Of a DNA stretch of 64,000 nt, positions 39,353-56,173 are shown in pieces; within the stretch, counting starts at the first letter, position 1; the number at the start of each line of letters is the position of its first letter. The position numbers and the translations under genes were made by a program. The stretch spans positions 245,757-309,756 of IMG/VR virus record IMGVR_UViG_3300042473_001540; one strand, 5' to 3'. The notes beneath the pieces were generated by a model. The model did not search any database and had not been told where the DNA came from. It saw only the letters and a program-made list of their open reading frames with translations.

Positions 39353-40186
39353 ATGAAACAGTTTGAACTCTCCCCACAATTAGTTTTTGAAGGCGGCAAC
39401 GTATTCAAAACCTCAGATGGCTATCCACGCACCACTCGTATCCCACTGGCTTTGATCAGTCCCACGTTGGATTGGCTGGAAAAAATCACAGGGCTGCCTA
39501 TGCATGGCATGACCTTGGGCAGTGTTGGCAAAAAAGCCAGCAGTGGGGATATCGACATTGTAGTCGACAGCAAGAAAATGTCAAAAGCCCAATTTGCCCA
39601 AAGTCTCCAAAACTGGGTGTTGAGCCAAGGTTTGAACCCCAAAGAGTATGTGAAGCCTGCTGGAGAAGTTCATCTGTTGACACCAATTGCAGGTGATCCC
39701 AAGAATGGCTTCGTGCAAACTGACTTTTTCTTCCATGATGATCCTCAATGGATGAAATTCAGCATGCAGAGTCCAGGAGACGCCAGCAACTACACTGGTG
39801 CAGAAAGAAATCAACTCATGAGCAGTATTGCCAAAGCATTGGGAATGAAATACAGTTGGCAACGTGGACTGTTGAATCGGGAAGATGAATCTGTTATCTC
39901 CACTGATCCTGATGTGATTGCACAAAAGCTATTGGGGCCCAGATTCACTCACGACAGCTTCCAAAGTGTTGAAACTATTCAACGAGCCATCAAAGGCAAT
40001 AGGGCTATTCATCAAGGGTTGACTGAGTTGATTCAAACTCTAAGGAGCTTGGATAAATTAGGGCCCACTGGCAAACCCACAATGGATGTGAAAACTGGGA
40101 AGTTTAAGCAGAAATCTCCCAGTGAGCAACGCAAATCAGAAGAAGAAGCTGCAAGGATTGAGCAGTTGACAGGTGTAGCTGTTTAG
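39353..40186 (+). CDS. Pol-beta superfamily nucleotidyltransferase, candidate virion-packaged
   Basis: LGSVGKKASSGDIDIVVD (GS..DxD) and VQTDF; TAAATA 39340-39345. Confidence 0.75.
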   Translation: MKQFELSPQLVFEGGNVFKTSDGYPRTTRIPLALISPTLDWLEKITGLPMHGMTLGSVGKKASSGDIDIVVDSKKMSKAQFAQSLQNWVLSQGLNPKEYVKPAGEVHLLTPIAGDPKNGFVQTDFFFHDDPQWMKFSMQSPGDASNYTGAERNQLMSSIAKALGMKYSWQRGLLNREDESVISTDPDVIAQKLLGPRFTHDSFQSVETIQRAIKGNRAIHQGLTELIQTLRSLDKLGPTGKPTMDVKTGKFKQKSPSEQRKSEEEAARIEQLTGVAV

Positions 40187-42402
40187 CTTTTGTTTCCGTA
40201 TCGGGGATCAATTGGCTTGACATGAATCTGATCAAACAGCAGAGGAAAGTTGGGCAAAACTTTTGGTAGGTCTGTTCTCTCCAACCAATTGTAATTTACG
40301 CTGCTGTGTGGAATGAAGTTGGGGAAATCGTGAGTTCCGCCCTTGCTCTTCAAATGATGATGAAATTTGTGTGCCAGGTCACAATCTAGGTCTAGGCACA
40401 GGGCTTTGTCGCCCATTTTGGTCCAACCTTTTATTTGTGCTGGCACAACCACAGTGTTACCATGCATGCTCATGAGGTGAGGCACTGGTTTTTGGCTATA
40501 CAAAACAGTCATGTGAAGATCATCAGTATTCATACAGGGAACACCTTGACTTTCACACCATTCTTTGAGCTCTCGAGCATTTTTGGGACTCATGCTCAAA
40601 ACAACTATGGTGCCAGCAGCGTGCTCATGAGCTTCCATTACTGTGTTCCTAGGGTGCTTGAGATAGCGTCGAACTGATTGGAACAGCCTATTGGAAAGTT
40701 CATCATCCAAACCCACAGCTTGGTGGAAAGCCTTTTTGTCTTTGTTCAAAACAGCCTCACGTGCCTTGGTGCCGCTTATTCCACTAACGCCAATGCCATC
40801 TGGATGCCGTTCTCCAGCTGATACAATTTCAATCGTCACTGGTTGACGTTGATGTTTTTCACGTATTTCTGGACTGTTCCAAGAGTCAAAAAGGTCTTTC
40901 ATGCCCTGCACACGATCTTCGCCGGCAACAAATACAAAATGTCTATAGCCTTTGTTGTAGAGCCATTCTGCGGCTTGCAGCGGAGTTTTGATGCTCTCAT
41001 CCTGCACCACATGATCTTGGTGTTGAGACATAATCTCTTGGAAAAACTCCAGCTTTTCCGCCCAAGGCAATGGATTCTTTTTTCCGTCTTGACTGTGACT
41101 CAAAAAGATCCAATAGTCACCCTTGCCAGCGTGTTTGGCCATTGTGTTAACCAAGTGCTGATGACCACGAGTGGGAGGATTCATCCTCCCAAAGGTCCAA
41201 ACTACCCGGTTGTGTTCTTGTTCCATCAATGAATCAGGCTCGCCTTTTCTCATAAATTGGGCACGATTTACAAACTTCACTATTCCAGTGGGAGTTACAG
41301 CCACAAATCCCTCATGTCCTGGATCTCCACCCAAACTAGCACCCACTGTCCCATCTGTTTGACGGTCCATTTGTTTCTTGAGATCCAGCTTCAAACTTGT
41401 TAACAAACTTACTATCCGCCACACGCTATTGTAACCATGGATGTGGCTTTGAATCCATTTCAAACACTTGGCCTGCATTGCAGGGCTAGCAGTACTGTTG
41501 AGCCCTGTAAGCCACTCCAAAAACTCTCTACTCACATGGCTAAATGTGGAACTACCACGTTCTGCCTTTTTGGCCAAAAAGCTTTTCATCAAGCCAGGAA
41601 GGCTCAAGATTTCATGACTGGCTAGTTGTCCTCTGTCCAAAAATGATTTCACACTTACAGCATGCACTCTAAACAAGTGGGATAATTTGTCAACTAAGTT
41701 TTTATCCAGGTTCAAACTTTTGAGCATGGTGGCTTCATGAGGTAGGATAGCCAGTCCTTGATCAGTGCGAAAGCCATATTGACTAATGTTTCGCAAGGCT
41801 TCTGGTTCCTGATCTTCAGGGCTTTGATAAACACTGTGCATGACCACGCCAGCACTGCTGTTGGCAATCATTTCACCATATTGACTGTTGACAGGCACAC
41901 GATAAGTTATTTTGTTGGGTGTAAATTCATATGCCCCATCTACAATGGGAGGTACACCAGTCCACAACAAATCCGCTTGAACGTAACCGATAAATCCTTT
42001 TGGGGTAACTTTTTTCAACAATGGGTAGAGACTGGCTATTTTGTTGGCATATGCCAGTCGAGCACTCTTTGCACTGGGGCTGGTGTCTTTCATTTTCCTG
42101 CTCATGAGCATATTGACAATATCCTCAGGGCTTGTGGTTAAACCATTGTATTTTTTACTGCTGAATCCAGCTTTGTCTGTTAACACAAATTTATAGTCTT
42201 TCCATCCAGAAATCAAGGCTGGTGTTCCATCCATTTTTATACTAACATACTCGGGTTGATGAGCAGTTGTGCTCAGTATATGAAAAGCTCTTTTGGCACC
42301 ATCTAACCCCTCATCGAAGATCATGTCTTCTGGATGCTCGATACGGGCTTTGGCCTCAGTCAAAGAGAGATTTACTACTGGTAATAAGTCAAACAGCTTC
42401 AT
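40183..42402 (-). CDS. three-domain protein: unknown N-domain, HIGH-type cytidylyltransferase-like domain, Acb1-like 2H phosphoesterase
   Basis: FGRMNPPTRGH (HIGH-like), VAGEDR; LHMTVLYS and FIPHSSVNY (two HxT/S motifs); TAAATA on minus at 42442-42447. Confidence 0.75.
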   Translation of the reverse strand: MKLFDLLPVVNLSLTEAKARIEHPEDMIFDEGLDGAKRAFHILSTTAHQPEYVSIKMDGTPALISGWKDYKFVLTDKAGFSSKKYNGLTTSPEDIVNMLMSRKMKDTSPSAKSARLAYANKIASLYPLLKKVTPKGFIGYVQADLLWTGVPPIVDGAYEFTPNKITYRVPVNSQYGEMIANSSAGVVMHSVYQSPEDQEPEALRNISQYGFRTDQGLAILPHEATMLKSLNLDKNLVDKLSHLFRVHAVSVKSFLDRGQLASHEILSLPGLMKSFLAKKAERGSSTFSHVSREFLEWLTGLNSTASPAMQAKCLKWIQSHIHGYNSVWRIVSLLTSLKLDLKKQMDRQTDGTVGASLGGDPGHEGFVAVTPTGIVKFVNRAQFMRKGEPDSLMEQEHNRVVWTFGRMNPPTRGHQHLVNTMAKHAGKGDYWIFLSHSQDGKKNPLPWAEKLEFFQEIMSQHQDHVVQDESIKTPLQAAEWLYNKGYRHFVFVAGEDRVQGMKDLFDSWNSPEIREKHQRQPVTIEIVSAGERHPDGIGVSGISGTKAREAVLNKDKKAFHQAVGLDDELSNRLFQSVRRYLKHPRNTVMEAHEHAAGTIVVLSMSPKNARELKEWCESQGVPCMNTDDLHMTVLYSQKPVPHLMSMHGNTVVVPAQIKGWTKMGDKALCLDLDCDLAHKFHHHLKSKGGTHDFPNFIPHSSVNYNWLERTDLPKVLPNFPLLFDQIHVKPIDPRYGNKS

Positions 42403-45213: not shown

Positions 45214-46245
45214 ATGACTATCAATCTAGACAATGTTGATTTTTCAAAAGTAATTGCCATAACTGATGTGCATTTTGGCATGCGGAACAACTCCAAACAG
45301 CACAACACTTGGTGTACTGAGTTTTTGGAGTTTGTGGTCAAACGAGCACAAGAGCTGAAAATCAAAACACTCTTGTTTTTGGGCGACTGGAGTCACAACC
45401 GCAACAGTGTGAACATCAGCACACTCAATTACAGCCACAATGGCATGAAACTGCTAAACAACAATTTTGACAATGTGATAATGCTCTTGGGCAACCATGA
45501 TCTCTATTTTCGAGATACTCTAGAGCTGCACAGTATTCCCTATGCACAGGATTTTTCAAATATTCACCTAATTGACAAAATCACCACAGTCAAAGACTAT
45601 TGTTTTGTTCCTTGGTTGGTGGGTGATGAGTATAAGTTGATTCAAAAAATCAAACAGCCTTATTTGTTTTGTCATGCTGAAATTGCCAAGTTCCGGATGA
45701 ATGCCATGGTGGAAATGCCCGATCATGGCGGCTTGAACAGTGAACACTTTCAAAATCAAAAATTGGTGTTCAGTGGGCATTTTCACAAAAGGCAGCGAAA
45801 GGGCAACATTTGTTATATTGGCAATGCCTTTCCTCACAACTTTGCAGATGCGGGAGACGATGATAGAGGGTTGATGATCTGGACTCCTGGAACTGATCCC
45901 ATATTTGAAAAATGGCTTAGTGCACCCAAGTATCGCACGTATAACCTTACAGAGGCACTTCAGGATCCTACCGGCTTGATAGACAACAAAACTTTCGCAC
46001 GGATAACAGTAGATGCTGACTTAACTTATGAAGACCTTGCCTTCATTAGAGAGTTATTTGAAACTCAGCTAGCTGCCTTGGATGTGAGTTTTATTCATGG
46101 CAGAAGTGATGGAGATGACACTGTTCTTGATGATAGTGAAATCAATTTTGAAAGCGTTGACTCAATTGTGGTGTCACATTTGAATAGTATTGAAAGCACT
46201 ACAATGAACAAACAACGCTTGATTGAAATCTATCAGAGTATTTGA
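45214..46245 (+). CDS. gp47: recombination endonuclease subunit (Mre11/SbcD-like)
   Basis: TDVHFG, GDWSH, GNHD, SGHFH; promoter 45161-45189. Confidence 0.93.
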   Translation: MTINLDNVDFSKVIAITDVHFGMRNNSKQHNTWCTEFLEFVVKRAQELKIKTLLFLGDWSHNRNSVNISTLNYSHNGMKLLNNNFDNVIMLLGNHDLYFRDTLELHSIPYAQDFSNIHLIDKITTVKDYCFVPWLVGDEYKLIQKIKQPYLFCHAEIAKFRMNAMVEMPDHGGLNSEHFQNQKLVFSGHFHKRQRKGNICYIGNAFPHNFADAGDDDRGLMIWTPGTDPIFEKWLSAPKYRTYNLTEALQDPTGLIDNKTFARITVDADLTYEDLAFIRELFETQLAALDVSFIHGRSDGDDTVLDDSEINFESVDSIVVSHLNSIESTTMNKQRLIEIYQSI

Positions 46246-48023
46246 ACTTGATCATCCTCAAAAACGTCACAATCAAAAACTTCATGAGTGTGGGTGCTGT
46301 TACACAATCAGTTACTCTCACACAACCTGGCTTGACTCTTGTATTGGGCGAGAATCTAGACTTGGGCGGCAACGGCAACCGGAATGGTGTTGGCAAATCG
46401 ACGCTGATTTCAGCCATTTGTTATGCCCTGTATGGTCAAGCTCTTACTAACATCAAGAAAAACAATCTCATCAACAGCATCAACAAAAAGAACATGGTGG
46501 TGAGTATTGAGTTTGAAGCCCACGGCAACAGCTACAAAATTGAACGTGGCCGTGCCCCTAGTTTTTTCCGCTATGTTGTAAATGATGAATCAGTAAATGA
46601 AAACAAAAGTGCAGACGAAGCTCAAGGCGAAAACAAAGATACTCAGAAAGAGATTGAGAAGGTATTGGGCATCAGCCACACCATGTTCAAACACATTGTG
46701 GCTTTGAACACCTATACTGAGCCATTTTTGAGCATGGGTGCTGGAAAACAGCGAGAAATAATTGAAGAGCTGTTGGGAATTACATTACTGTCTCAGAAGG
46801 CAGAAAACCTCAAAAAGCTTATTCAAACAACCAAACAAACTATTGAACAAGAAGAGTTCAAAATACATACTATCAAAAACAGCAATACACGTATTTTGAG
46901 CACTATTGAAAGTTTGAATCAAAAAACCCAACAGTGGGATACTCAACATCAGAACAAAATTCAAGACTTGGAAAATGCACTAGATGCTTTGAGTCATCTT
47001 GATGTTGAGCAGGAAATTCAAAGTCACAAAGACAATCTTGTGTATCGTGAACTTCAAACAGCATTGAAGAATGTGCGCAGCCAAAGCCAAACAAAAACAC
47101 AGCATGGAACACAGCTGAAGGCGCAACAAAACAACTGGTTAACTCAGTATAGTCAAATTCAAGACCACAACTGCGCAATGTGTGGTCAAAAGATTCATGA
47201 CGAGAAACAAACACATCTGCTGGACGACCTTGAGCACAAAATTACCAAACTGGACAGCAGCATTCAAACACTGGAACAGGAATGCCTGAGTTTGACACAA
47301 GAACTGGATGAGCTCATGGGTCTGTCTAGTGCTGTATCGCTAAACCAAACATTTTACAAAAGCATTGATGAGGCATATGAGCATCGAAACAGTCTCACAC
47401 TTCTTAGTGGTGAACTGGACAAACTTAAGCTTGAAACCAATCCTTATCAAGCCCAAGTGGGTAATTTAAATGACACACTGCAAGAAGTCACTTATGATTC
47501 ACTAAATGAACTCAGCCAACTCAAAGACCATCAAGAGTTTCTCTTGAAGCTGCTAACAAACAAAGACAGCTTCATCCGAAAGCGTATTATTGATCAAAAC
47601 CTCAGCTACTTGAATCACAGACTGGGTGAATATCTAGCTGGATTGATGTTGCCACACCAAGTTAAATTCAGCAACGACTTGGGAGTTGAGATCATGCATA
47701 TGGGCGTAGACTTTGACTTTGACAGTCTCAGCCGAGGTGAACGCACAAGAGTTTGTTTGGCACTCAGCTGGGCATTCCGAGACATTTTTGAAAACATGAA
47801 CACCAGCATCAACTTCATGGCTGTTGATGAGATCCTTGATGTGGGACTTGACAGCACAGGACTTGAAAGATCTCTAGAGACGCTTAAGGCTATGAGCAGA
47901 GATCGGAACAAGAACATTTTGTTGATCTCACATAGAGAAGAGCTAACAAGTCGCTGCGATCGAGTTTTGTATGTTATCAAAGAGTTAGGTTTCACTCGTT
48001 TCAGCTATGAAAGCGGTGAGTAA
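46242..48023 (+). CDS. gp46: recombination ATPase subunit (Rad50/SbcC-like)
   Basis: NGVGKST Walker A, CAMC zinc hook, LSRGE signature, AVDEILD Walker B, ISH. Confidence 0.93.
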   Translation: MNLIILKNVTIKNFMSVGAVTQSVTLTQPGLTLVLGENLDLGGNGNRNGVGKSTLISAICYALYGQALTNIKKNNLINSINKKNMVVSIEFEAHGNSYKIERGRAPSFFRYVVNDESVNENKSADEAQGENKDTQKEIEKVLGISHTMFKHIVALNTYTEPFLSMGAGKQREIIEELLGITLLSQKAENLKKLIQTTKQTIEQEEFKIHTIKNSNTRILSTIESLNQKTQQWDTQHQNKIQDLENALDALSHLDVEQEIQSHKDNLVYRELQTALKNVRSQSQTKTQHGTQLKAQQNNWLTQYSQIQDHNCAMCGQKIHDEKQTHLLDDLEHKITKLDSSIQTLEQECLSLTQELDELMGLSSAVSLNQTFYKSIDEAYEHRNSLTLLSGELDKLKLETNPYQAQVGNLNDTLQEVTYDSLNELSQLKDHQEFLLKLLTNKDSFIRKRIIDQNLSYLNHRLGEYLAGLMLPHQVKFSNDLGVEIMHMGVDFDFDSLSRGERTRVCLALSWAFRDIFENMNTSINFMAVDEILDVGLDSTGLERSLETLKAMSRDRNKNILLISHREELTSRCDRVLYVIKELGFTRFSYESGE

Positions 48024-48052
48024 TTATCTGTACTCCATAAATATAGATATAT

Positions 48053-48082
48053 GCCGGTCACGACCCTGGCAGGTCCACCGGC
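48053..48082 (+). promoter_or_regulatory. leader hairpin between late promoter (TAAATA 48038-48043) and homing endonuclease RBS
   Basis: GCCGGT/ACCGGC outer and GACC/GGTC inner stems. Confidence 0.55.
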
Positions 48083-48108
48083 TCTATCGCTTTAAGGGAG
48101 CAACAGCT

Positions 48109-48933
48109 ATGTCTATTTATCGTAATATCAAACCCTTTGGGTTTTATGTGTATGCCTACTTAAGAAAAACAACATCCAACAATGGTCCTGCAGGAACCCC
48201 TTATTATATTGGAAAAGGGACCGGCATACGTTACAAAGAAAACCACGGAACTCTACCTGTACCAAAAGAAGCATGGAGGATTGTTGTCCTTGAACAAGGA
48301 TTAACTAATCTTGGTGCTGTTGCGCTCGAAAGAAGGCTGATACTCTGGTGGGGACGCCTGGATAATAACACAGGTATATTACACAATCGAACTGATGGCG
48401 GGGATGGGGCAGTTGGGAAGATAGTCTCTGATGAATCAAGAATGAAAGCAAGTGTTAACAATTGTGGCAAAAAAAGAAGTGCAGAAACAATCAAGAACAT
48501 AAAAGATGCATTATCTCTTATCGACAGGTCAGGAGAGAATCATCCGTTATATGGCAAAAAGCATTCTGATGAAGCTAGATCTAAAATGAGCGAAGCTAAA
48601 AAAGGCAGGTCCTATGAAGAAATTTATGGCCCAAAAGCAGAAGAGATGCGAGCTGCACGCTCACAAAAATCTCGGGGACGAAGTCTGTCTGCTGAGACCA
48701 AAGAAAAGATAAGTTTAGCAAATCGAGGCAAGAAAAAACCTGCAGGCTTTGGAGTCCGAATGTCCGCAGTAAGGTCTGGCCAAAAAGTCTCTGAAGAAAT
48801 TTTGAAGAAGAGAGCACAGATATTCGAAGCAACAAAACAAACTTGTGAACATTGCGGGAATATCTTTGGTTTAGCGAACTATATCAGATGGCATGGTCCT
48901 AATTGCAAAACTCAACCTAACCAACTACTATAG
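48109..48933 (+). CDS. GIY-YIG homing endonuclease with NUMOD3 repeats
   Basis: FYVYAY..YYIGKG..RY; N.TDGGDG; HPLYGKKHSDE.R.KMSEAKKG. Confidence 0.9.
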   Translation: MSIYRNIKPFGFYVYAYLRKTTSNNGPAGTPYYIGKGTGIRYKENHGTLPVPKEAWRIVVLEQGLTNLGAVALERRLILWWGRLDNNTGILHNRTDGGDGAVGKIVSDESRMKASVNNCGKKRSAETIKNIKDALSLIDRSGENHPLYGKKHSDEARSKMSEAKKGRSYEEIYGPKAEEMRAARSQKSRGRSLSAETKEKISLANRGKKKPAGFGVRMSAVRSGQKVSEEILKKRAQIFEATKQTCEHCGNIFGLANYIRWHGPNCKTQPNQLL

Positions 48934-48948
48934 GCGATTCGATTGGGA

Positions 48949-49464
48949 TTATACACCAGCAGTATAACTCAGTTCAGCAATCTTCAGCTTGTTTTGTTCA
49001 AAAAATGGCTCAAACTCTGTTATTACAAAGGTTTTGTAACGTGCGTGGTTTTCAACCGTGAAGTCAGCCAAATGTTTTTGATCAAAACAAGCATAACTTC
49101 CTTTGTGATTGATGCGTATGACAACAAACCACAAATCTTCTGGATCACATGTGTCAAGTGTTTGCTCTATCCAAGCATCCAGTTGTTTGATATCTCCATT
49201 GCACATGAGTCGATGCCACGGAAAGTCTTGATAAAACTTACTTTCAATCACCAGCTTTTTCATATGGGAAGGTGGAATGAGATCACTTTTGAAGTAGCTG
49301 ATTTGCGTAGCATCCATAGTGTCTTTTCTCTTGGTGTTTGCTCCTCCAATGAAGGCACCAGAATTAGGAACCCTAATAAATTTGGCTTCATATAACGTTG
49401 TGAGAAACTTGGCTATCCGTAATTCGCCTGCATTTCCTTTTGCCTTGCCTTTGGACCCTGCCAT
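48949..49464 (-). CDS. Holliday junction resolvase (Hjc-like PD-(D/E)xK)
   Basis: KGNAGELRIA, RVPNSGA, SDL, VIESKFY. Confidence 0.8.
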   Translation of the reverse strand: MAGSKGKAKGNAGELRIAKFLTTLYEAKFIRVPNSGAFIGGANTKRKDTMDATQISYFKSDLIPPSHMKKLVIESKFYQDFPWHRLMCNGDIKQLDAWIEQTLDTCDPEDLWFVVIRINHKGSYACFDQKHLADFTVENHARYKTFVITEFEPFFEQNKLKIAELSYTAGV

Positions 49465-49503: not shown

Positions 49504-49532
49504 TTGATTTTATAGTTTTAGATGGCTATAAT
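49504..49532 (+). promoter_or_regulatory. sigma70-type promoter of the TnpB-like gene
   Basis: TTGATT-N17-TATAAT preceded by GC. Confidence 0.6.
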
Positions 49533-49556
49533 CAAAATAACAAAAGAGCATTTCAA

Positions 49557-50366
49557 ATGAAGCACAACAAGCCACAACACCGCAGCATTTTTATTGTAGT
49601 TGATCCAGTAGATCAAAATCGGCTCAATAGTTTTTTCCGACAAGAGTTGGGATTTTACAATACCCTTGTAGGAACCTTTGGAAGTCGTGTAAGAGCATTT
49701 CCACAAACTATTCTCAACATCACACACGATCAAGCATCACTCTTTTGTGATCTAGCCAAATACAATCTCAACATTCGCGAATTGGTGAAAAAGCCTCAAG
49801 AATGGCCTGAACAACTGAAAAGTTATTTTCCAGTTGCTTTTGACAGACTCACACAAAAAACAATTTTGACCGAAGCGCAAATTATGATGTTTGAATCTGC
49901 CGGAGCCAATCGCTGGATTATGATTCCAGAAGCCAAAAAACAGATGGCTAGAGCAGTTATTGATTTTTACAAAGAGCAAGCAGACATTTTGGCTCATCCC
50001 CAATCAAGCGATATAATTGAGGTGGCTTACAAGACACCACCCAGCAGCTTGAGTGAGTTGGAAATCAGCAACAAACGTCATGCACAGATCCCTCGTAATG
50101 AAATCAAATACAAATACAACAACACTGAACAACATACAGAAATTTGGACTCCGTTAACTACAAAACCCATTATTATTCCGCATTTTAACCTTAACGAATA
50201 CAATCGATGGACAACAGCAATAGTCAAGCAAGAGAGTGGTAGATTCTGTGAATACAACACACCTTGGGTAATTGACTTCAAAAATACAAAAAACAATTAT
50301 CTTTTGAAATATCTAGACAGCACAGCACGTAGTCCAGGCAATTATAGAATCAGCAACTACGCATAA
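49557..50366 (+). CDS. TnpB/Cas12-like WED-REC protein lacking RuvC (putative RNA-binding or RNA-guided, nuclease-free)
   Basis: N-terminus RSIFIVVDP..RLNSFF..FYNTL resembles HTH_OrfB_IS605; KQMARAVIDFYK REC helix; beta-rich WED-like end; no GIDxG or CxxC. Confidence 0.55.
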   Translation: MKHNKPQHRSIFIVVDPVDQNRLNSFFRQELGFYNTLVGTFGSRVRAFPQTILNITHDQASLFCDLAKYNLNIRELVKKPQEWPEQLKSYFPVAFDRLTQKTILTEAQIMMFESAGANRWIMIPEAKKQMARAVIDFYKEQADILAHPQSSDIIEVAYKTPPSSLSELEISNKRHAQIPRNEIKYKYNNTEQHTEIWTPLTTKPIIIPHFNLNEYNRWTTAIVKQESGRFCEYNTPWVIDFKNTKNNYLLKYLDSTARSPGNYRISNYA

Positions 50367-50388
50367 CAGAGTATATTTTTAAAACATA

Positions 50389-50752
50389 GTGGCTTTATAT
50401 GATGGTGTAGTGTCCATCCGTATCTACCAGGCGCGAAGGCCGGGGAAAATTGCGTATGAGGGTTTACGGTTCTATGCCCTCGCCACAAAAGTGAACAAAA
50501 AGGATCCAGCCTCTCACTGTCCCGTGACGCTGGAAGGGGTTCAGTCAACAGCCTGTCTGACTGAATTCCCTGCGTGTGTGATGAGCACATAACCGAGAAG
50601 GCAGCTCCATGAGCATAAGTCCGAGAAGAGAGTCAGGAACGCTGGAAATAGGTTCTCCGCCAGCTGGAAGCAATTCCCAAGACGAGACAGGCAGGCCGAA
50701 GCCCTATACGAAAGCCTTTTCACACTTCTCCTCCCGGTGGGGAGAAGTGTGA
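50389..50752 (+). ncRNA. large structured non-coding RNA downstream of the TnpB-like gene
   Basis: At least 6 local hairpins, long-range stems 50389-93/50482-86 and 50443-53/50670-78, 8-bp pairing 50551-58/50685-92; G-U pairs favour + strand. Confidence 0.75.
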
Positions 50753-50872
50753 CTTCCTCCCTAACGAAATACCCAGAACTATTATCAGTCCAACAAGTAT
50801 CCTATTCCAGATCCAATAATATCATCAATAAGATCATTGAGATTCATACTAGATCACGCCCAGCTAAAATTA

Positions 50873-51040
50873 TCACTTCTTTGATTGAGCCTTCCTATAA
50901 GCTTCGGCTTGCATCTCATAGTGTTTGGAAATAGTTCCACTCAAAGATTTCATCTGTGAAGTGGTGAGACGCCAAGCTTCACTGTAGGTGAGTCCTCCGT
51001 TCATGTAATACACTAGGTTGGCAATATCGCTTTCAATCAT
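50873..51040 (-). CDS. gp51-like baseplate hub assembly protein; may be translated as -1 frameshift extension of upstream gene (not in ORF track)
   Basis: MIESDIANLVYYMNGGLTYSEAWRLT..; frame open back to the T TTT TTC heptamer at 51112-51118. Confidence 0.7.
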   Translation of the reverse strand: MIESDIANLVYYMNGGLTYSEAWRLTTSQMKSLSGTISKHYEMQAEAYRKAQSKK

Positions 51041-51105
51041 TTCCACTTCTTTTTCGCAGCTTCTCAGTACTTGGGTGATGGCTACATGATCACCCCTGAG
51101 AAGCT

Positions 51106-51939
51106 TTAGTCGAAAAAACTTGTGGGATCAAAGTCAATTGACTGGCTCCAAGTGTGTGAGCAACCGTCGCATTGAAAAGAGGTTTCGGTATCAATACCAG
51201 TTTTGTTGAGCTCTTTCAACTTGTCGATGATGGCGTTGGCACTGGTTGTGGGAATACCTTTCACAAACTCTTGAATGTATTCTTGATTGGTGACCAGTTC
51301 ACCACTACTGATTATTTTGATTTCAGTTATGCTCATGGCCATGATGTCCAATGTGCGTTTGGCCATGTGATTCACTTGTTTGGTCACACTACTGATCTTT
51401 TCTGCATCAGTTGTGTCTGTTTCTTGTAACACTTTGATGCTTCTGGCTTGTTCCACTTCATTCAACAGTTGTAGATTTCTCTGCTCAAAGTTGTAAGGAC
51501 GCAGGAAAACTTGGAGTGCTCCATCTATTTCAATATAGGTGGGGCCTTCAACATAAGTTTGTGTTTCGATAAATGCAGAGAGGTCTATACCAAAGTTGTG
51601 CTCTTTTCCACAACTGGGACATGTGGTGTCTATTTCCATAGTTGACCCTGCACTGGCAATTCTTATGGCAACAAGTAGGGTGTTGATGTCAGGCTCCACA
51701 AGCTTCTTGGGATCTTTGACTCCAGGAACACAGTTTCGGAAAACACTCAACAATGCATCGCCATTCAACAGCGCATCAGGAGTTTTCAACATGATTTGAT
51801 CAATAGCAGTCAACGGATACACTGCCATTTCGCCATTGGCTGAAGTCTCAAGGAAATCACTAGGATAAAATTTGCCTCGTGTTGGCAATTGTGCATAGGC
51901 CTTGGGTGTGTGAAAGTATTGACTCAATGGATTACTCAT
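51106..51939 (-). CDS. baseplate hub assembly chaperone (gp26-like)
   Basis: NPL..YF..P..Y..LPTRGKFY, T.DE/Q..LKTPDALLNG, D...LLVAIRIAS, CPSC..CDGC; TAAATA on minus at 51977-51982. Confidence 0.8.
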   Translation of the reverse strand: MSNPLSQYFHTPKAYAQLPTRGKFYPSDFLETSANGEMAVYPLTAIDQIMLKTPDALLNGDALLSVFRNCVPGVKDPKKLVEPDINTLLVAIRIASAGSTMEIDTTCPSCGKEHNFGIDLSAFIETQTYVEGPTYIEIDGALQVFLRPYNFEQRNLQLLNEVEQARSIKVLQETDTTDAEKISSVTKQVNHMAKRTLDIMAMSITEIKIISSGELVTNQEYIQEFVKGIPTTSANAIIDKLKELNKTGIDTETSFQCDGCSHTWSQSIDFDPTSFFD

Positions 51940-54415: not shown

Positions 54416-56173
54416 ATGGCTTGGAAAAAATATTTCACAACAGTACCGAGTCAAGCTAGACTCACTGCAAGACTAGCAGAAATCAACAAAGACAACAGTC
54501 AAGGTGCAACCACTACAAAATTCAGCAGTTATTTGCCTGAAGTCTATGCTGGTGCTCCAAACCGAGTTGAACGCTATGTGGCTTATGAACAAGCTGATTT
54601 AGATAGTGAAATCAATCGCAGCTTGGACACTATTGCTGAGTTCTGCACACAAAACCAAAGTGATGATGAGCCTATTCCTTTCCGATTTATTTGGAAAGGT
54701 GATGTTACTGAAACTGAAACAGAACTTTTGGCCAGTGCACTTCAACAATGGTGCAGCATCAATAAACTGAATCAACGAATCTTCAAAATATTCCGTAATA
54801 CTGTCAAATACGGTGATCAATTTTTCGTCCGAGATCCAGAAACCTATGAGCTGTTGTGGGTAGATTCAGCCAAAGTGGAAAAAATCATTGTCAATGAGGC
54901 ACAAGGCAAAAAAATTGAACAATATGTGATTAGAGATTTGGATTTCAATTTACAAAGTCTAGTGGCAACCAACCCTCTTGTGCATGATCAATACAGTTTC
55001 CCAGGAGGTTACCCTCGTAGTGCGAACCCAGCAGCTGGTGCAGGCAACATCAACTATGGACAGCCCACAACACCTGGCGGCCGTACCAGCAGATTTTACA
55101 ATCCAGCCAACAGCATGGCAATTGATGCCAACCACGTGGTGCATCTCAGTTTAAGTGAAGGCTTGGATCAATATTGGCCTTTTGGCACCAGCATCATTGA
55201 AGCAGTTTACAAAACTTACAAACAAAAAGACCTTTTGGAAGACTGCATTCTCATTTACCGTATTGTGCGTGCACCTGAGCGCAGAGTGTTTAAGATTGAC
55301 GTGGGTCAGCTGCAAGGTCAACGTGCCATGCAGTATGTTGAAAGAGTCAAAAACGAAATTTACCAAAGGCGACTCCCAAACCGCACAGGTGGTGGCTCAA
55401 GTATTATTGACAGCGCCTATAATCCCATAAGCATTACAGAAGATTTCTTCCTTGCAACCAACAGTGAACAACGCGGCACAACTATTGACACTTTGAACGC
55501 TGGCGAAAACTTGGGCACTATTGACGACTTGAAATACTTCAACAACAAGTTGATGCGCGGGCTGGGTATTCCCAGCAGCTATTTGCCCACTGGACCAGAT
55601 GATGGCACAGCAGTTTACAACGATGGCAAAGTGGGAACAGCATTTATCCAAGAGTATAGATTCAACAAATATTGCCAAAGATTGCAGAACAGTCTTGCGC
55701 CAACATTGGATATGGAATTTAAATTGTTTTTGAAGTTCCGTGGCATTGAGGTACACAGCAGTTTGTTTGAGTTGGCATTTAACGTTCCACAAAGTTTCAG
55801 TCAATATCGCAACATGAGCATTGACACTGAGCGTGTTAACCTCTTCAGTTCAGCTATGAACAGTGATGCAAGAGCTTACATGAGCAAGAGATATGCGCTC
55901 AAGCGTTATCTAGGATGGACAGAAGAAGATATTCTGGAAAATGAGCGGATGTGGAAAGAAGAAAACAACGACAAAGTCAAAGGCAAGACTGGCACCAGCC
56001 CCATTGAAGACAGGGGTGTGGGACTGGGATCAATAGGGATACGCCCTTCACCAGAGCCTGATTTTGGTATGGGTGGACCTGAGATGCCTCCTGAAGCCCC
56101 GCTTGAGACACCGGGATTTGAAACACCTGAAGTTGCTCCAGGTGCTGAAACACCTCCAACTGAAACACAGTAA
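54416..56173 (+). CDS. gp20: portal protein
   Basis: W.KYF, ALD.IAEF, KYGDQFF, LEDCILIYRIVRAPERRVFKIDVG, EDFF..RGT.IDTL.GE; TAAATA 54383-54388. Confidence 0.95.
   Translation: MAWKKYFTTVPSQARLTARLAEINKDNSQGATTTKFSSYLPEVYAGAPNRVERYVAYEQADLDSEINRSLDTIAEFCTQNQSDDEPIPFRFIWKGDVTETETELLASALQQWCSINKLNQRIFKIFRNTVKYGDQFFVRDPETYELLWVDSAKVEKIIVNEAQGKKIEQYVIRDLDFNLQSLVATNPLVHDQYSFPGGYPRSANPAAGAGNINYGQPTTPGGRTSRFYNPANSMAIDANHVVHLSLSEGLDQYWPFGTSIIEAVYKTYKQKDLLEDCILIYRIVRAPERRVFKIDVGQLQGQRAMQYVERVKNEIYQRRLPNRTGGGSSIIDSAYNPISITEDFFLATNSEQRGTTIDTLNAGENLGTIDDLKYFNNKLMRGLGIPSSYLPTGPDDGTAVYNDGKVGTAFIQEYRFNKYCQRLQNSLAPTLDMEFKLFLKFRGIEVHSSLFELAFNVPQSFSQYRNMSIDTERVNLFSSAMNSDARAYMSKRYALKRYLGWTEEDILENERMWKEENNDKVKGKTGTSPIEDRGVGLGSIGIRPSPEPDFGMGGPEMPPEAPLETPGFETPEVAPGAETPPTETQ

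Follow-up and report, generated by a model that had tools for sequence, protein, structure and literature searches.

A predicted RuvC-less TnpB-like protein family and a large structured RNA encoded beside it in T4-like jumbo phages

In the TnpB superfamily the protein works with an RNA whose coding sequence lies at, or a short way past, the 3' terminus of the protein's own gene and in the same orientation. A viral contig from IMG/VR raises the question of whether such a partnership can be kept once the nuclease domain is gone. In the window analysed here (64,000 nucleotides, positions 245,757 to 309,756 of record IMGVR_UViG_3300042473_001540) a first-pass annotation had picked out a 269-aa ORF as a TnpB-like protein that stops short of RuvC, followed by a dedicated non-coding RNA from which candidate guides were proposed. 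Following up these proposals by comparison of related phage loci and by structure prediction, we arrive at a reading to which we give a probability of about one half, namely that the locus encodes a nuclease-free, omegaRNA-like ribonucleoprotein (RNP) that is vertically inherited in T4-like jumbo phages.

The setting of the ORF is that of a phage core region. As the first-pass annotation had it, the ORF lies among core genes and no transposase is present; the neighbours are gp47-like and gp46-like genes (together 45214-48023), a PDDEXK_15 nuclease, a gp26-like baseplate hub gene and a T4-type portal gene (Table 1). The same protein (100% identity) and a near-identical RNA region are found on IMG/VR contigs of 328,603 and 309,756 bp, and contigs of this size carrying T4-like neighbour genes indicate a T4-like jumbo phage. 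Searches of INPHARED phage genomes at the DNA and protein level, the latter with the window protein and two distant members, were without a match, so the phage is without a cultured relative in that collection, and a scan of GTDB genomes returned no relatives. The source habitats of the RNA-bearing phage contigs, which reach 518 kb, are freshwater and other environmental metagenomes. The order PDDEXK_15, ORF, RNA, small ORF, gp26-like gene is kept in all type-A lineages, and the locus is single and syntenic across all contigs examined; none of the hallmarks of an IS200/IS605 element, that is TnpA (Y1) or a serine recombinase, LE/RE ends and multiple copies, was found at the locus.

Table 1. 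Positions in the window of the TnpB-like ORF, the structured RNA and its parts, and the flanking genes
Feature	Position	Strand	Remarks
GIY-YIG/NUMOD3 homing endonuclease	48007-48933	+	between gp46-like gene and PDDEXK_15
PDDEXK_15 nuclease	48949-49464	-	divergent from ORF; conserved neighbour in nearly all loci; context only
sigma70-like promoter	49504-49532	+	TTGATT-17-TATAAT; 10/12 positions match
TnpB-like ORF, 269 aa	49557-50366	+	ATG start; homologues begin at the same ATG
Novel structured RNA, ~390 nt	50387-50775	+	starts 20 nt past the ORF stop codon
RNA 5' domain	50389-50486	+	P1 (50389-50393 with 50482-50486) around hairpins 50401-50418, 50419-50454 and 50458-50481
RNA central and 3' domain	50501-50762	+	long-range helix AGG (50501-50503) with CCU (50760-50762)
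Hairpins of central/3' domain	50505-50534, 50535-50571, 50574-50590, 50604-50614	+	
UAACCGAG motif	50590-50597	+	invariant in all aligned homologues
RNA 3' sub-domain	50630-50755	+	closed by GAGUCA (50630-50635) with UGACUU (50750-50755)
Hairpins of 3' sub-domain	50641-50664, 50666-50677, 50724-50748	+	the last is the terminal hairpin
Conserved RNA 3' tail	50756-50775	+	CCUAWCGRAAU type
57-aa ORF	50873-51046	-	convergent with RNA; without family match
gp26-like baseplate hub gene	51106-51939	-	
T4-type portal gene	54416-56173		

Several further features of the window and of related contigs are recorded here in their own right. The GIY-YIG/NUMOD3 gene is missing from the same position in three related loci (L007, L008, L010) and is therefore an insertion polymorphism. 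Other homing endonuclease genes lie nearby elsewhere, one of the DUF723 type in L001 and a NUMOD3 gene in L126, where this gene and a Gp23-domain fragment form an insertion that separates the TnpB-like ORF from the gp26-like gene; the L126 contig also encodes a homologue of SmpB, the tmRNA partner protein (L126:1-234). Most related loci have a small convergent ORF (45-89 aa) at the corresponding place downstream of their gp26-like gene. The portal gene product of one related phage (L128:7183-8060) is 1104 aa long with a weak intein-splicing match inside Portal_T4, which suggests that it carries an intein. In a 738-aa protein encoded in the window (40183-42402, - strand), DUF6267 and a cytidylyltransferase-like domain are joined to an Acb1 anti-CBASS domain at the C terminus (E 1.2e-18); the protein is possibly a fused counter-defence enzyme.

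The ORF product represents a protein family for which Pfam, PHROGs, NCBIfam and PADLOC have no entry. Two protein searches gathered 15 close homologues and, at 50% identity, ~170 clusters, in which near-full-length members measure 230-345 aa alongside shorter, fragment-length entries and one repetitive outlier. Down to ~20% identity the clusters have an uninterrupted frame of constant length, and E30, N35, Q141, K173-R174-H175-x-Q177, W237 and Y248 are invariant or nearly so. A longer TTG start at 49440 was rejected, as it would swallow the promoter and the homologues start at the ATG. None of the ~170 clusters contains a RuvC domain or a C-terminal extension long enough to hold one. The family alignment shows no Cys motif, in agreement with the earlier remark that the CxxC finger is absent, and there is no OrfB_Zn_ribbon match that would indicate a zinc-finger/TNB domain. 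Scans of 56 members against Pfam (including HTH_OrfB_IS605) and NCBIfam gave no match to TnpB, the models in question being PF12323, PF01385, PF07282 and the NCBIfam TnpB models, and a PDB profile search with the family returned noise only. Aligned by hhalign with E. coli InsQ, the family profile reached a probability of 0.1, a value of limited sensitivity given that the InsQ side was a single sequence; a homologue search with InsQ gave only ~98% identical copies and so no diverse TnpB profile. No sequence method detects TnpB, and the motifs that had been matched to it by eye are therefore without support from sequence comparison.

Putative transcription signals at the locus are conserved. The first-pass annotation credited the ORF with a sigma70-type promoter of its own, and this promoter is kept as TTGAYT-N17-TATAAT in five close lineages and is recognisable in three distant ones. 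Comparison of related loci supports no conserved promoter between ORF and RNA. An internal candidate, TTGACT-17-AATTAT (50272-50300), was discarded, as codon conservation explains it and it is not kept in distant loci. Given that no conserved promoter separates the two, co-transcription would be the simplest reading, with the promoter upstream of the ORF probably serving the RNA as well. At one related locus (L001:5799-5830) a terminator-like hairpin (GCGGGA...TCCCGC plus a T-rich run) stands between the ORF stop and the RNA start; in that lineage the RNA may be initiated independently or arise by processing. At another (L095:3534-3832, - strand) the TnpB-like ORF and the RNA are separated by a 300-nt spacer with a ~17-nt tandem direct repeat (TCATTTATAGGCACATT, twice).

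The ~500-nt gap that separates the ORF from the convergent small ORF (50367-50872) has no conserved ORF, and its GC content between ~50400 and 50780 is 52-55%, compared with ~40% nearby. The first-pass description of this gap as non-coding and densely paired stands by virtue of covariation, but the density seen by eye is not significant alone, the single-sequence fold being weakly better than shuffles (z -2.17). In an alignment of 11 sequences from loci whose proteins are 25-89% identical, the consensus comprises 69 pairs, 44 of them with compensatory changes, as against 13-19 covarying pairs in controls in which the partners were slid. Paired cells make up 93.5%, compared with 76.6 +/- 1.0% in column shuffles and 41-48% with slid partners. 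G-U cells exceed A-C cells in the consensus pairs (39 to 12) and the alifold consensus energy is lower on the + strand than on the - strand (-76.4 versus -59.0), which together place the RNA on the strand of the ORF. Between close relatives the nucleotide sequence of the RNA is better conserved than that of the ORF (95 vs 85%, 93 vs 74%, 84 vs 69% and 81 vs 71%).

The RNA folds into a 5' domain and a larger central and 3' domain (Table 1). Covariation is seen in the closing helix P1 (GUGGC/GCCAC, CCAGC/GCUGG, UUGGC/GCCAA), in hairpin 50535-50571, where most pairs have compensatory changes, and in the terminal hairpin, which covaries in L123, L095 and the type-B RNAs described below; the loop of hairpin 50641-50664, AAAUAGGUUCUCCG, is almost invariant. 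Past ~50775 the sequence varies, and indels distinguish even phages with 89% identity between their proteins. Neither the gathering threshold nor a limit of E<=10 brought a credible Rfam match for the window or five related loci; the highest-scoring one was PtaRNA1 on the minus strand at 23.5 bits against a cut-off of 47, and ARAGORN found no tRNA or tmRNA. A covariance model of a 111-position core (R1) finds homologues of the RNA readily. Judged by this comparative evidence, the ~390-nt RNA represents a large structured RNA class that is new and outside Rfam. It is about twice as long as typical omegaRNAs.

A TnpB or Cas12 RNA would be expected to combine a conserved scaffold and a guide that pairs with a target beside a TAM/PAM. 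A scaffold-like RNA is present here; no variable guide was found, and no target in the 64-kb window or, by exact 16-mer search, in the sister contigs of 309-328 kb. The first-pass annotation proposed to look among homologues for a conserved scaffold with a variable end. A conserved RNA scaffold does lie downstream of the homologous genes, but the 3' tail is conserved too, and the alignment of homologues contains no variable, guide-like segment within the RNA. Both candidate guides are rejected. The one placed after TTCAC (50724 on) forms the 5' strand of the stem of the terminal hairpin, which covaries (50724-50733 with 50739-50748), and the one placed at 50753-50775 lies partly in conserved long-range helices, 50753-50755 pairing with part of 50630-50635 and 50760-50762 with 50501-50503, the rest being the conserved tail motif. 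Searches of the 64-kb window with k-mers of the RNA gave matches at chance level and no target; an exact 16-mer of the sequence following the tail has no second occurrence in the 309-kb or the 328-kb sister contig, again with no target, and a 14-mer target scan was swamped by chance matches. A 12-nt match upstream of the portal gene (54363) was treated as chance, there being no covariation in L007; the site is conserved in L117, where the tail matches only 9-10 nt of it. We consider guide-type targeting by the proposed RNP unlikely.

How tightly are protein and RNA linked? With the R1 model the RNA is still found immediately 3' of ORFs whose products share as little as 24% identity, and in the RNA tree the TnpB-like ORF occurs on both sides of the midpoint root, so that the pairing looks ancestral and its absence elsewhere a matter of later loss. 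The two can nevertheless be separated, in both directions, as a motif scan across metagenome and IMG/VR contigs shows. One RNA clade (support 97/92) is without the TnpB-like gene and has instead a ~120-aa basic ORF 19-48 nt upstream of the RNA. This arrangement, which we call type-B, is seen at no fewer than 13 metagenome loci with enough upstream sequence and on further IMG/VR contigs, including ones of 216 kb (216,498 bp) and 518 kb (518,643 bp). Conversely, in L294 and L296-298 the TnpB-like ORF runs straight into convergent genes, leaving no room for the RNA at the locus, and in L004/L005 and L126 the non-coding stretch downstream has no detectable homology to it; none of the invariant residues has been lost in these protein-only lineages. 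In L295 and L275 the TnpB-like ORF, a small ORF and the RNA follow one another in that order. Since in some lineages the protein or the RNA has survived alone, the partnership counts as facultative over evolutionary time and not obligate. The idea of a dedicated RNA thus holds in part: the RNA is conserved and structured, and its pairing with the ORF on the same strand looks ancestral, but it also occurs without the protein, and the protein without it.

The ~120-aa basic ORF family (L266:8355-8711; the type-B loci L255-L290 and L299-L316; L295:3375-3677) is marked by the motifs WFPxDAK, SPWQRR and NYGTLAKPG and has no Pfam or PHROG match. The possibility that it derives from part of the TnpB-like protein was discarded on the evidence of hhalign, by which the two are unrelated. 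It is a candidate for an alternative partner of the RNA.

This two-way separability is the main strength of the reading that competes best with ours, in which the two genes are independent: the RNA would be autonomous (regulatory, structural or catalytic), sitting as a 3' extension of any upstream gene, and the protein would be an RNA-free or differently partnered nucleic-acid binder. The occurrence of the RNA behind an unrelated small ORF in type-B loci, the intact invariant residues of protein-only loci and the small ORF that intervenes in L295 and L275 all agree with it, as does the fact that no RNA sub-domain tracks the presence of the TnpB-like protein and that the 3' tail is conserved rather than guide-like. 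Against it, the ORF-RNA pairing is not only ancestral but widely retained, and chance is an improbable reason for so rare an RNA, 390 nt long, to have come to lie directly 3' of a gene for a TnpB-like fold and in the same orientation. It is on account of this ancestral siting that we favour an omegaRNA-like partnership; independence of the two genes is possible, and we think it rather doubtful. That protein and RNA do form an RNP we regard as an even chance.

An AlphaFold2 model of the window protein, built on a 56-sequence alignment (pLDDT 88.6, pTM 0.85), shows a strand (10-14), a helical bundle (17-146) and further strands (175-242), with no regular secondary structure in 147-174 and a low-confidence linker at ~150-160 (block pLDDT 55). 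Searched by Foldseek against the PDB, its top 13 matches are all Cas12n, Cas12f, Cas12k, Cas12p or TnpB, the PDB matches having E values of 4.8e-3 to 0.1, probabilities mostly of 0.84-0.99 and TMq up to 0.43; in BFVD two family members come first and the named matches that follow are mostly viral TnpB/Fanzor 'transposases'. A second model, built on a 24%-identical homologue (P0067, pLDDT 91.1), gives Cas12, TnpB or Fanzor for the top 42 PDB matches consecutively, with a best E of 8e-4 and probabilities of 0.99-1.0 for the best. For both models the TM-scores are modest at 0.35-0.44, with Foldseek E values of 8e-4 to 1e-1. TnpB, Cas12f, Cas12n, Cas12k and Fanzor are accordingly the nearest structural neighbours of both models, in support of the WED/REC assignment made in the first-pass annotation, and the protein is predicted, with good support for a prediction, to be a WED+REC-like lobe of TnpB/Cas12f in which a REC bundle is inserted into a discontinuous WED domain. 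In the model the protein stops ~25 residues past the last WED-like strand with no RuvC, which agrees with the earlier claim that it ends where RuvC should begin.

With nothing found by hhalign against InsQ, the choice between homology and convergence falls to structure. The protein could be an unrelated OB-like/helical nucleic-acid-binding protein whose WED+REC likeness is analogous, a reading in keeping with the lack of sequence or profile similarity to TnpB and with TM-scores of only 0.35-0.44. However, two independent models and two libraries return TnpB, Cas12 and Fanzor almost exclusively, over the whole length and at probabilities up to 1.0, and the models share with these proteins an unusual discontinuous-domain topology. 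Convergence is therefore, in our view, improbable.

The missing nuclease might be supplied from outside, the RNP recruiting a separate enzyme such as the divergently encoded PDDEXK_15 protein to make a two-part RNA-directed nuclease. Loci of every type almost always have PDDEXK_15 as the adjoining gene, but colinearity of T4-like core genes explains this adjacency equally well, and the gene persists on the other strand in type-B loci that have no TnpB-like gene. PHROGs moreover labels the protein as resolvase-type. We regard a split effector of this kind as very improbable. A decaying IS200/IS605 remnant, that is a truncated tnpB pseudogene and leftover omegaRNA with no present function, would fit the absence of transposase and RuvC domain, but is effectively refuted by the conservation pattern, in which an intact frame of constant length over ~170 clusters to ~20% identity and invariant residues go with fixed synteny, a conserved promoter and RNA covariation that signifies selection on structure.

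The nuclease-free RNP that we favour would consist of the products of two ancient genes, vertically inherited in a clade of T4-like jumbo phages, one a recognition-lobe (WED+REC) protein and the other a structured RNA. Most likely the protein would bind the ~390-nt RNA as TnpB binds omegaRNA, giving a complex that does not cut, with the large RNA perhaps supplying the bulk normally given by the RuvC lobe. Such an RNP would bind its nucleic-acid target through a fixed, conserved surface of RNA or protein rather than a variable guide, and may act as a regulator or recognition factor early in infection. A fuller version, in which a TnpB recognition lobe and an enlarged RNA that structurally replaces the RuvC lobe serve a core early function, the ~120-aa basic protein having taken over as RNA partner in one clade, is distinctly speculative and on balance unlikely; the complex might then be, for example, a non-cutting R-loop or roadblock RNP by which one fixed site is marked, whether to control transcription, to prime replication or to recognise the genome.

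A RuvC-less family spanning ~170 clusters would mark the minimal protein part of the TnpB/Cas12 superfamily and would show how far RNA can replace protein in complexes of this type. The natural variants (protein and RNA, small ORF and RNA, all three, or protein only) provide a ready comparative experiment on how far the components need each other. A putative DNA- or RNA-binding module of ~270 aa with an RNA partner would be of interest as a compact targeting tool only if guide-like programmability exists.

Full-text literature searches gave no description of a TnpB derivative entirely without RuvC, nor of the ~390-nt RNA. To our knowledge the nuclease-dead derivatives of TnpB and Cas12 (TldR, Cas12k, Cas12m, sigma-associated dCas12f) all still carry RuvC. 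Among large phage RNAs the present one resembles GOLLD, ROOL and the HEARO/IscB omegaRNA in being ornate, supported by covariation and present in phage genomes, and differs from them in having no Rfam match even at E<=10. ISDra2 TnpB (PDB 8exa, 8h1j) and its relatives in IS200/IS605 and IS607 elements share with our models the predicted WED+REC fold and topology, and the omegaRNA/reRNA of TnpB is, like the RNA described here, structured and encoded in the same orientation as the gene, at its 3' side. Unlike TnpB, the present family lacks RuvC, the zinc-finger/TNB domain, TnpA, transposon ends and sequence similarity; its RNA starts past the stop codon instead of inside the ORF and shows no variable guide, and its locus stays in place and is passed on vertically in T4-like phages of the lytic type. 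TldR offers a precedent, being a domesticated, non-mobile, phage-encoded TnpB derivative with no nuclease activity that acts through RNA (PMC10705468; bioRxiv 10.64898/2026.09.22.753285). It is found in temperate phages and retains both a RuvC, though truncated and degenerate, and a guide matching a promoter either nearby or of the host, whereas the protein described here has no RuvC at all, and searches of the 64-kb window and the sister contigs revealed no guide paired with a target. The best Foldseek neighbours, Cas12f, Cas12n and Cas12k (RdCas12n 9j09, CnCas12f 8hr5, AsCas12f 8j1j/8j3r/7wju, Cas12k 8axb), keep an active or dead RuvC and are CRISPR-associated, unlike the RuvC-less protein described here, beside whose RNA neither a CRISPR array nor repeats were noticed on inspection; one of them, Cas12k, is naturally non-cutting with a large sgRNA, and in this it resembles the RNP that we propose.
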